A stretch of DNA of 64,000 bases from Salpingoeca rosetta (taxonomy: Eukaryota > Protista > Choanoflagellata), in contig JAWQFM010000009.1 in the NCBI GenBank assembly GCA_033442325.1, positions 1,467,672-1,531,671 on the forward strand, read 5' to 3'. Numbering within the stretch: the first letter of the stretch is position 1; every line of letters starts with the position of its first letter. The notes under the pieces were generated by a model. It was not told the origin of the DNA and searched no databases. It saw only the letters and a list, made by a program, of their open reading frames with translations. Positions 9,001-12,000 of the stretch are shown here, in pieces. The position numbers and the translations under genes are program-made.

Positions 9001-12000
9001 GCACACTAACCATCGCACACGAAATATCAAGCAAGAAGCAACAACGCACGAACCAACACACAAGCCGCAACATGCAAGTAGCAACATGGACGTCACAACA
9101 CACAACACCATTGTCTCTGTCCCTGGTTACCTGGACCATGGCAAAGCCCGAGTAGTAGTAGAGCCACCAGGTGAACTGCCCATATGAGGAGGTGACGTGG
9201 CGCGATCCCGTCTTGGTCGCTGGGATCTTCACGGGGTTCATGCGGATTGAGTAGTGAAGCTGCTCAGGCATCGGCACATTGCCGTACGCATCACCACCAA
9301 CAGCAGCAGCGGCGGTACGTGGGCCACTGCCGCGGGAAGAAACGTCGTTATTTGCTCGCTGTCTGTTGTTGGACGGGAGTGCGGTGGTGGTGGTGGTGCG
9401 CATCATGTTGTCGTCCATGTTGTGGAATTCGATTGCAGCCAGTACGTCGCTGAGTCGCCGGGAGGGCATCGCCTCCTTGACCATCTCCGTGGTGCTTGAG
9501 AAGGGCACGAATGGGTCATGAACGGTCATGAACGCGAGCTCGCGCAGGTCTGGCACAAGTGGAGCCGACGTCACGTTGGCGGTGCCGTTGTTGAAGAGCG
9601 GTGCTGGCAGCGACATGACGCCATCCAGCGGCATGGCATCCTCGCCGTTGCGCGGAACATATGTGTGTCTGCAGAGCGTGACATTCTTGGCACATGGCGA
9701 GGGCACCTGCACCGCAACAGCGACGTGATCGCGGCCAGTGCGCTCCTTGCCTACCGCCTCGATGTAGTACGAACGGCCTTCTTCTAGGACAATGGGCGCT
9801 GACTGTTGCGTGGCCACGCGGTGCCACTCCCACGGGAAGTTGGAGCCGTAGCGGGCAGCAATCTTGCGCACGTGTGCGCGCGTCTCGTCTGTGCTGAGGA
9901 AGAGCTCGCAGTGGTCGTCGCCTGCGATCCAAAACGTGTACGCGCCACTCGCAGGCGCCGTAAACACGCCCCTGTGCGGTGTAACCAGTTGGCCGGCAGT
10001 CGACCAGTGAATGTGAGTGCAACCAGTTGAGTTGGGCGTGGTGGTTGGTATGACTAACATGGTCGCAAACAACTCGCACGCAGGTGTAGGTGCTGCACAC
10101 ACGCAAATGTAGGTGCTCACACATGCAAATGTAGGTGCTGCACACGCAAATGTAGGTGCTGCACACGCAAATGTAGGTGCTGCACACACGCACACACGCA
10201 TACACGCATGCACGCACGCACACCCATACACGCACACACGCATACACGCATGCACGCACGCACACACCTAATGCGCTGGCCAAAGTTGTCGGCGACGTCA
10301 AAGGGTGAGGAAAAGACGCGAGACGTGAGGAGGAACCGCTGGTCTGGACGCGACGGGTAGCGCGGATCAGCATACAGCTTGCGGAGTTCGTTGCCCTCAA
10401 TGTGCTCCCACCGCTCTATCAGCATGCCATGGTCACCGCCTGCGGCACAAAGAGGGAGATAATGTAGACGGTGGGGGTGGGGTGAGGAGTGGAAGATGTT
10501 GGGAGACACAGGCAGTGTATTTTCAAATGCTTGCATGCATGCAAGTGTGCACATTACATGGTTATGTTACACCAGGCGCATGCAACAGCGACTCGCACCA
10601 ACGCACGCGCACAACCATACACACCAAAGACAACCCACATGGTCACAACTCCAGTCACACCAGCCACACCACCAACACCAGCAACACCAGCAACACCACC
10701 AACACCACCAACACCACCAACACCACCAACACCACCAACACCACCAACAAAGCAGTCATGGGAGTGCTCACTTGATGGCTGGTGGTCCTGCTGATCCGAC
10801 TGCATCTCGGACAGGAGAGTGGCCGTGCACTTGAGGGTGTCGACAGCGGCGCCCAGGGCCTGGAATGTACGATTCATCTCCTGGACGATGCGGCGCGTCT
10901 GGTTTGTGTCTGGCGCGTAGAAGATCTTGGAGCCGCCAAACACTTCCTCGAGCTTCACCAGCGATGTCTGGCCGAACAATGAATGGGGCGCGGGGAAGAG
11001 GGGATGAGGAGAGGGTGTGTGTGTGTGTGTGTGTGTGTGTGTGTGTGTGTGTGTGTGTGGGTGGGTGTGTGTGTGTGTGAGGGTGACGAGATGGCAGCAA
11101 CTCAAACTTTGCATTAGGGCTAGCCTACACAGTGCAAAATGCATGCATGCACGCACGCACACAAGGTAGCCAAACACACACACACACATACACGCACACA
11201 AACACACGCACGCACTTGCGAAGCCGTTGCGGCCTCGTTCTGCTCTGGATCAGCCTGTCTGTGCAGGGACCACTCTGAGACGACGGGGCACATGAGATAT
11301 TGTGCCGCGGTGATAACATCCATGCCGCCAAACAGCACTTCCTCCACGCGCGGGTCCGTGAGCAAAGGGACAACCGCCCTGCGCATGGCATTGAGTGTGT
11401 CTGCATCGTCAGGGGAGAGGGTGACGCCGGTGCGGTTGCGAATGGTGTCGATGATGGCCGCGGTGGAGTCGTTGGTGCTGGTGATGAACGCTTCCACAAC
11501 GCCTGAGATGGAGTGCGTGACAGCATGCCGTGCTGCCGGCGACGACGTGAGCGAGCAGTAGCACGCGGCTGCCTCTTGTCCGTCCCGTACGGTTCGCTCG
11601 CCTTGCGAGGCAGTGGTGTTGGTGAGGCGCCTGAACAGCGCGATACAGCGTGCGGGCACGGCAGGGATGGTGGTGGCGTTGTGCATGGCCGCGTCCACAT
11701 GCATGGCACCGTCGAGCAAGTCGACCATCATGTGCTCGGCACTCGTGACGGAGACGCCTTCGCGAGCGAGGTTGTGGTGCAGCTCGCGAATGAGGCTCGG
11801 CGCAATGATGTCTGCGCCAATGTCTGGTGCCAGATCATACAGACCGTTGCACAGCTGCGACTGCATGAACACGGCGATGCCCGCAGACGGGAATGCAAGC
11901 GGTGGACTCGACACTGCACACATGCGCATGGATATGTGTGTGTGTGTGCGTGTGTGTGCGTGTGCGTGTGTGCGTGTGCGTGTGTGTGCGTGTGTGCGTG

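Follow-up and report, generated by a model that had tools for sequence, protein, structure and literature searches.

A PA14 domain nested in the first ectodomain of an ABCA1/4/7-type transporter gene of Salpingoeca rosetta

The 64,000-nucleotide stretch of the Salpingoeca rosetta genome analysed here (GenBank assembly GCA_033442325.1, contig JAWQFM010000009.1, positions 1,467,672 to 1,531,671 of the forward strand; hereafter the window, with coordinates counted from its first base) carries on its minus strand a gene for a full-length ABC transporter of the ABCA family. We assembled the gene model from sequence alone, with the start codon and some of the distal exon borders inferred; it comprises 16 exons, joined throughout by GT-AG sites into a coding sequence of 8631 nt that contains no internal stop and encodes a protein of 2876 aa (Table 1). 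Within the first large ectodomain (ECD1) of this protein lies a complete PA14 domain. The gene is a single, constitutive ABCA1/4/7-type gene that received this domain before its lineage and those of at least two relatives diverged, and purifying selection has kept the domain ever since.

The PA14 domain spans residues 416-562 of the model (147 aa) and is encoded by exons 4 and 5 spliced in frame. The Pfam PA14 model run on exon 5 alone with hmmscan aligns over 52-115 of its 147 positions and scores 21.6 bits (E 2e-4), with GLEYA as the next, weaker match, and in a six-frame scan of the genome (55.4 Mb in 68 contigs) PF07691 finds exon 5 at 24.1 bits, just above the cut-off of 24. Over the same genome a PA14-subfamily profile of length 154, A1, built from eleven repeats of multi-PA14 proteins, scores 110 bits on exon 5, where its positions 57-151 match with E 3e-30, and 37.5 bits on exon 4 over positions 4-58 (E 7.6e-8; 38.4 bits in a local rerun). 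Because the matched profile positions are complementary, the two exons are abutting halves of one PA14 domain, and with 4-151 of 154 profile positions covered the proposal of the initial annotation, a complete PA14 domain spread over two exons between two ECD1 landmarks, holds. The three junctions that it had drawn (10772>10439, 10268>9971 and 9131>8892) likewise proved sound, as the sequence at each provides a GT donor and an AG acceptor and the joined frame is open throughout. Once spliced, the domain aligns gap-free over the exon junction to 543 PA14 repeats, mostly over query positions 8-155 of 165. A HMMER search of 1.84 billion representative sequences with exon 5 matched 4954 proteins at E<=1e-3, the best 150 of which were listed, and weaker PA14-bearing ABCA relatives may lie beyond these; the top matches are multi-repeat proteins, 40-50% identical per repeat, and those that were scanned hold four to seven Pfam PA14 domains each (E down to 3.5e-74). 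Against solved structures, profile A1 matches 6QDI (E 4e-14) as well as RsgI3 and Epa6, and its matches to 6QDI and Epa6 indirectly support a PA14 beta-sandwich fold for the window domain. A search of the ESM Atlas gave generic PA14 leads only, all below 0.9. Elsewhere in the genome four other loci match profile A1 at 57-68 bits (C26:823337-823606, C22:451013-451492, C14:1131235-1132024 and C8:1016415-1016699), two of them inside very long open reading frames (ORFs) of 3987 and 2658 aa.

The C-terminal part of the PA14 domain and the downstream ECD1 landmarks are encoded by one exon in one uninterrupted ORF, so the C-terminal two thirds of the domain and these landmarks do not come from different genes. 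The frame is lost if exon 4, exon 5 or the two together are skipped, and the only removal that stays in frame, the joint loss of exons 3-5, deletes the conserved ECD1 core; on this frame arithmetic we rejected a cassette-exon reading of exons 4 and 5. The domain is moreover a net insertion and not a replacement, since the Y-x-PDT and Y-x-IRM landmarks of the window protein are 346 aa apart. In 50 animal ABCAs this spacing ranges over 103-174 aa, with a median of 160. The surplus of ~186 residues is made up of the 147-aa PA14 domain and a low-complexity spacer of ~40-50 aa. Among 118 listed animal homologues of the ABCA1/2/4/7 type, none carries PF07691 in its precomputed Pfam domains. The closest paralogue in the genome (C6:1136000-1139400, L010), which is 51% identical in the first transmembrane domain (TMD1), has the usual ECD1 landmark region, and profile A1 finds no match in it even at E<=10. 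In all, at least two further ABCA-type paralogues are present in the genome, this C6 copy and one at C5:116536-116790.

The arrangement recurs in two further species, both uncultured eukaryotes, which we refer to as species 2 (protein P0007, contigs L005 and L008, from an ENA/GenBank metagenome) and species 3 (protein P0063, contigs L006 and L007, from two Logan runs). The order PA14-ECD1-TMD1 is kept in both and extends in species 2 to the first nucleotide-binding domain (NBD1), a single 2.9-kb contig of this species holding the C-terminal part of PA14, the ECD1 landmarks, TMD1 and the start of NBD1, while the contigs of species 3 hold the exon 4 homologue, the remaining PA14 sequence with one extra intron, ECD1 and TMD1. 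Measured against the window protein, PA14 is 63-67% identical, the ECD1 core blocks 58-63% and TMD1 70%, and PA14 is thus as conserved as the ECD1 core. Exon 4 is 66.7% identical to its homologue in species 3, and the part of exon 5 that follows PA14 (9131..9700) is 53-54% identical in both relatives. In species 3 the introns before exon 4 (phase 1) and within PA14 (phase 2, after the G-Q-R-x codons) lie at the same sites as in the window. Given that domain order and sequence are kept in both relatives and the intron sites in species 3, the insertion is older than the lineage split and under purifying selection. In the linker that follows PA14, two Cys residues and three sequon Asn residues (N568, N600 and N604) are invariant in both relatives, which fits an exoplasmic, glycosylated location of this linker. 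A metagenome scan found one locus, from the same species as L005, and a word search with residues 90-270 of P0007 returned itself alone from a collection of proteins of 235-749 aa, which is therefore silent on full-length kin. Some introns of these genes are stop-free and in frame (window 235-579, minus strand; species 2 contig L008, ~865-1000), and prokaryote-style gene callers therefore read through them; intron-derived Cys/Val-rich junk is found inside P0007 and inside a 1218-aa 'ORF'.

The predicted topology of the window protein, taken from a hydropathy scan and sequence motifs, is TM1-ECD1-TM2-6-NBD1-linker-TM7-ECD2-TM8-12-NBD2 (TM, transmembrane helix). Pfam finds ABC2_membrane_3 in both halves and ABC_tran in the second half, and the spliced model contains the Walker A, signature and Walker B sets of both NBDs. 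In a phmmer search of solved structures the exon 3 landmark aligns to residues 381-408 of the ABCA1 chain, its top match, followed by ABCA7, at a weak E of 0.019. In the continuous ORF of a relative, the downstream ECD1 landmarks (HY/SYSIRMN and the stretch after it) are colinear with ABCA1 residues 545-609, followed by TMD1 at 615-757 (E 2.5e-34), and here the solved structures rank in the order ABCA1, ABCA7, ABCA4, ABCA3. For the second half of the protein (TMD2-NBD2), 118 of the 120 best matches are animal proteins of the ABCA1/2/4/7 type, and the nearest full-length ABCA relatives listed are animal as well. A phmmer search of the solved structures with exon 5 gave no match at E<=1, and a three-species ECD1 profile found chance matches only among the same structures. 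At the C terminus the regulatory R-domain model PF23321 (R1_ABCA1) scores 19.6 bits (E 9e-4, cut-off 27) on a query that is cut at the window edge. With two TMDs, two NBDs, colinear ECD1 landmarks and ABCA proteins as best matches, the gene thus encodes a full transporter of the ABCA1/4/7 type, which bears out the ABCA assignment of the initial annotation, and the novelty relative to animal ABCAs that it suspected for PA14 agrees with the lack of PF07691 in the 118 best-matching animal proteins.

Table 1. Exons of the ABCA-type gene and predicted topology of its product. Positions are those of the window, residues those of the 2876-aa model.
Feature	Position	Strand	Residues (aa)	Content
Exon 1	12367..12715	-	1-116	predicted start (first ATG of the ORF), N-terminal tail, ABCA 'LWKN' motif, TM1; donor GTACGA, phase 1, fits exon 2 acceptor
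Exon 2	11216..11913	-	117-349	membrane-proximal ECD1; acceptor GTGCAG, donor GTGCGT; open frame over junction; four N-glycosylation sequons
Exon 3	10772..10967	-		ECD1 with upstream ABCA landmark, aa 362-387 (10931-10854); donor GTGAGC, phase 1 (one base carried over)
Exon 4	10268..10439	-	415-471	N-terminal third of PA14; acceptor CCGCAG, donor GTGTGT, two bases carried over
Exon 5, first part	9701..9971	-	472-562	C-terminal two thirds of PA14; acceptor GCACAG; D490-D491 (AGDDH, 9925-9911), loop K547-E548
Exon 5, remainder	9131..9700	-		one ORF with the PA14 part; linker with Cys and sequons NVT (9685-9677) and NGTANVT (9589-9569); ECD1 core LAAIEF (9442-9425), low-complexity spacer, landmarks HYSIRMN (9256-9236) and YSGFAMVQ; donor GTAACC
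Exon 6	8857..8892	-		12 aa extending a conserved 11-residue motif; GT-AG, phase 0
Exons 7-9	8562-8114, 7770-7626, 7418-6822	-		TM2-TM6 of TMD1 and linker to NBD1; Pfam ABC2_membrane_3, E 6.8e-10; tblastn of animal ABCAs, ~50% identity
Exons 10-14	6538-6149, 5853-5725, 5544-5488, 5282-5250, 4854-3537	-		NBD1, long low-complexity regulatory linker, TM7; colinear tblastn matches
Exon 15	580..3137	-		ECD2, TM8-12, most of NBD2; Pfam ABC2_membrane_3 (2.7e-34) and ABC_tran (1.5e-26); 42-49% identity to animal ABCA1-type proteins
Exon 16	1..234 in window	-		end of NBD2 and putative C-terminal R-domain; runs past the window start to a stop codon 428 bases further on
TM1			87-105	hydropathy
ECD1			~106-792	~687 aa; next TM begins at 793
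TM2-6			793-999	
NBD1			1204, 1306, 1326	Walker A, signature and Walker B, respectively
Low-complexity linker			~1365-1780	
TM7			1783-1801	
ECD2			1802-2027	~226 aa
TM8-12			2028-2245	
NBD2			2473	Walker A

Several features of the gene and its surroundings may be added. The exon 6 piece is unbroken with the preceding exon in species 2. The 33-nt micro-exon at 5250-5282 (minus strand) encodes the H-loop segment of NBD1 (11 residues), and a reading from ORFs alone that omits it suggests a degenerate NBD1. The linker between NBD1 and TM7 (within 3537-4854, minus strand) is ~400 aa long, rich in Ser, Ala, Asp and His and without a Pfam match, and is far longer than in animal ABCAs. The genome has a GC content of 55%, and its short introns are rich in (CA)n/(GT)n repeats. 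A tandem 12-nt repeat that can be read as (QTDR)n or (CLSV)n is located at window ~13400-13720, some 700-1000 bases ahead of the putative gene start, and three runs of exactly 100 N, either assembly gaps or masked sequence, are found at 21141-21240, 23515-23614 and 37958-38057.

In PA14 domains of the Flo/Epa type, calcium-binding loop 1 contains an adjacent Asp pair, known as DcisD. The Asp pair that the initial annotation had recognised as kept in the window domain is D490-D491 in WIAGDDH, and in the alignment of profile A1 to Epa6 it falls on 'ISADD' of this loop, a position equivalent to that of the Epa adhesin pair. Calcium-binding loop 2 of this type contributes an Asn together with backbone carbonyls. 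Loop 2 of Epa6 ('FFNNR') aligns with 'lhkEg' of the profile, which places a Glu (E548), invariant in the PA14 subfamily, in the position of the Asn. Judging from this alignment E548 could ligate Ca2+, though it is not the residue used by Epa/Flo. In a model of the PA14 domain of human B4GALNT3, which binds sulfated glycans, Ca2+ is liganded by D189/D190 and by the Q251/N252/E254 loop (PMC13018970). The ABCA topology predicted for the window protein puts its PA14 domain on the extracellular or lumenal side of the membrane. The ectodomains of ABCA proteins are built of a base, a tunnel and a lid around a hydrophobic tunnel and move as a rigid body upon ATP binding (PMC8219669, where these three layers are assigned no residue ranges). 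The most likely mechanism, as we infer it, would have the exoplasmic PA14 bind glycans in a Ca2+-dependent manner. It might thereby dock the ECD through which lipid leaves to a partner that is glycosylated, be it a bacterial surface, a lipid acceptor, the glycocalyx or the extracellular matrix (ECM); alternatively, the ECD movements that go with ATP binding may change with the glycan occupancy of PA14. By either route, contacts made by the cell surface would steer or gate the export of lipid. The roles in theca/ECM deposition, phagosomal prey sensing or glycolipid handling that the initial annotation proposed are conjectural. An ABCA gene with an inserted PA14 that serves as a Ca2+-dependent glycan-binding module and docks or gates lipid export is to us the best explanation of the whole, and a slightly probable one. 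Its most specific form, in which PA14 would be a docking lectin that places the hydrophobic exit tunnel against a particular glycan-bearing acceptor (sulfated ECM or glycocalyx glycans, or bacterial polysaccharide) and thereby targets the lipid hand-off in space, we consider distinctly unlikely.

Several points weigh against the explanation that we prefer. On the single exon the Pfam PA14 score is only at or just below the gathering score (21.6 and 24.1 against 24), the second Ca2+-loop residue is a Glu and not the Asn of Epa/Flo, and many PA14 domains are not proven lectins. Another is that the types of the runs bearing on transcription are guesses. Five contig runs from two studies (P2 and P3), guessed to be RNA, contain 0.44-0.53 of the 31-mers sampled from 8700-11100, and three likely DNA runs contain 0.94-0.95; the expected share is 0.47 with exons 3-6 and no introns and 0.07 without the PA14 exons 4 and 5. 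The shares of the probable RNA runs fit inclusion of the PA14 exons and, given the guessed run types, are suggestive only. If the PA14 exons were nonetheless outside the mature ABCA mRNA, as part of a nested or neighbouring gene, as pseudo-exons, or as an assembly chimera or bacterial contaminant, the finding that the nearest PA14 sequences listed from the large library are Verrucomicrobiota proteins would be readily accommodated. However, the C-terminal part of PA14 and the ABCA ECD1 landmarks form a single unbroken ORF, a transporter deprived of the PA14 exons would lose the conserved ECD1 core or, through skipping of exon 4, exon 5 or both, its reading frame, and the domain is split by a GT-AG spliceosomal intron whose position and phase are common to a relative. 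The same domain order in two independent environmental assemblies and the 31-mer shares of the probable RNA runs also agree with inclusion, and this alternative is highly improbable; bacterial contamination or chimera in particular was rejected on the basis of the spliceosomal introns, the exon common with ECD1 and the presence in relatives.

A more serious contender, though still an unlikely one, is that the PA14 domain is real and part of the gene but is not a lectin, serving instead as a structural spacer, a protein-protein surface or a shield of ECD1, with the Asp pair retained solely as a piece of the conserved fold core. PA14 has non-lectin roles in the pro-domain of anthrax protective antigen and in the GH3 beta-glucosidase KmBglI, where it works as an inserted domain. 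Together with these precedents, the replacement of the Epa-type loop-2 Asn by Glu and the generality of the Asp pair, a PA14 family motif that the RsgI-type PA14 of 6QDI and the subfamily consensus both contain, speak for such a role. Yet the loop residues E, G and D of K-E-x-x-G-x-D-H that are invariant in the subfamily are all kept, and the 63-67% conservation of PA14 goes beyond the need of a passive spacer. B4GALNT3, whose PA14 we take to resemble the window domain at the sequence level and which would be a biochemically tested member of this PA14 type, is in addition a lectin. A rather unlikely alternative concerns the location of the transporter, which may reside in an internal compartment (lysosome-related, phagosomal or a secretory vesicle, as for ABCA2 and ABCA3), where a lumenal PA14 would bind lumenal glycoproteins or the polysaccharide of ingested bacteria. 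This would suit the ABCA topology, by which the ECDs are exoplasmic and possibly lumenal, the presence of ABCA2-type proteins among the best matches listed and an organism that is presumably a bacterivore, but among solved structures the plasma-membrane exporters ABCA1 and ABCA7 match best. It is in any case a variant of the glycan-binding explanation and does not contradict it.

While the transporter and the PA14 domain are each ordinary, their nested combination, kept in at least three species, is not. A full-text literature search found no paper on a PA14-bearing ABC transporter, and domain databases that are filled automatically may already list it for the predicted protein of this genome; PA14 within an ABCA protein is apparently undescribed. 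The role of the large ABCA ectodomains was raised as an open question in a paper on the structure of ABCA4 (PMC8219669). A ligand-binding module that is grafted into ECD1 and kept in several species argues that the ectodomain is turned towards, and interacts with, something outside the membrane, and the PA14 insertion offers an experimental handle on what the outer domains of ABCA proteins do. The insertion is also a clean example of a polytopic transporter gaining a domain with the intron structure preserved, and it brings a transporter onto the short list of PA14 proteins that are not adhesins. Should the docking reading be true, a close relative of animals would have a natural counterpart of ABCA1-apoA-I docking that is amenable to genetics, and ABCA ectodomains would be directly demonstrated to be acceptor-coupling devices.

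Of the known systems, human ABCA1, ABCA7 and ABCA4 (7TBW, 5XJY, 8EDW, 7LKP) have the same full-transporter layout as the window protein, with large ECDs after TM1 and TM7 and the NBD motifs, and its TMD2-NBD2 half is 40-57% identical to ABCA-type proteins. Unlike these human transporters, the window protein has ~186 extra residues in ECD1 and a far longer linker after NBD1. The closest PA14 sequences among the matches listed belong to multi-PA14 surface proteins of Verrucomicrobiota (P0001 and P0005; e.g. WP_200269447.1 of Luteolibacter pohnpeiensis), with 44-47% identity per repeat and ~100 bits per domain. These are secreted proteins with seven tandem PA14 domains plus cadherin and other domains, whereas the window holds one copy in an intron-split eukaryotic transporter gene. 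The likeness raises the question of whether this PA14 type has moved between bacteria and the bacterivorous lineage. RsgI membrane proteins sense polysaccharide through an outward-facing PA14. The clostridial RsgI anti-sigma factors (6QDI, 6QE7), the best solved-structure matches of profile A1, are in contrast to the window protein bacterial single-pass signalling proteins with tandem PA14 and no transport function. The A-domains of the Epa/Flo adhesins (Epa6, 4COY/4COU) belong to the same PA14 fold family and share the aligned Asp pair, but are distant (profile E 0.007), sit at the tip of a cell-wall stalk and not inside a transporter ECD, and have an Asn in loop 2 where the window domain has a Glu. 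Finally, B4GALNT3 (PMC13018970, PMC11254600) likewise carries its PA14 in a non-adhesin membrane protein, in a lumenal or exoplasmic position and with an Asp pair and an acidic/amide loop; its host protein, however, is a Golgi glycosyltransferase, and the ligands there are sulfated LacNAc-type glycans.

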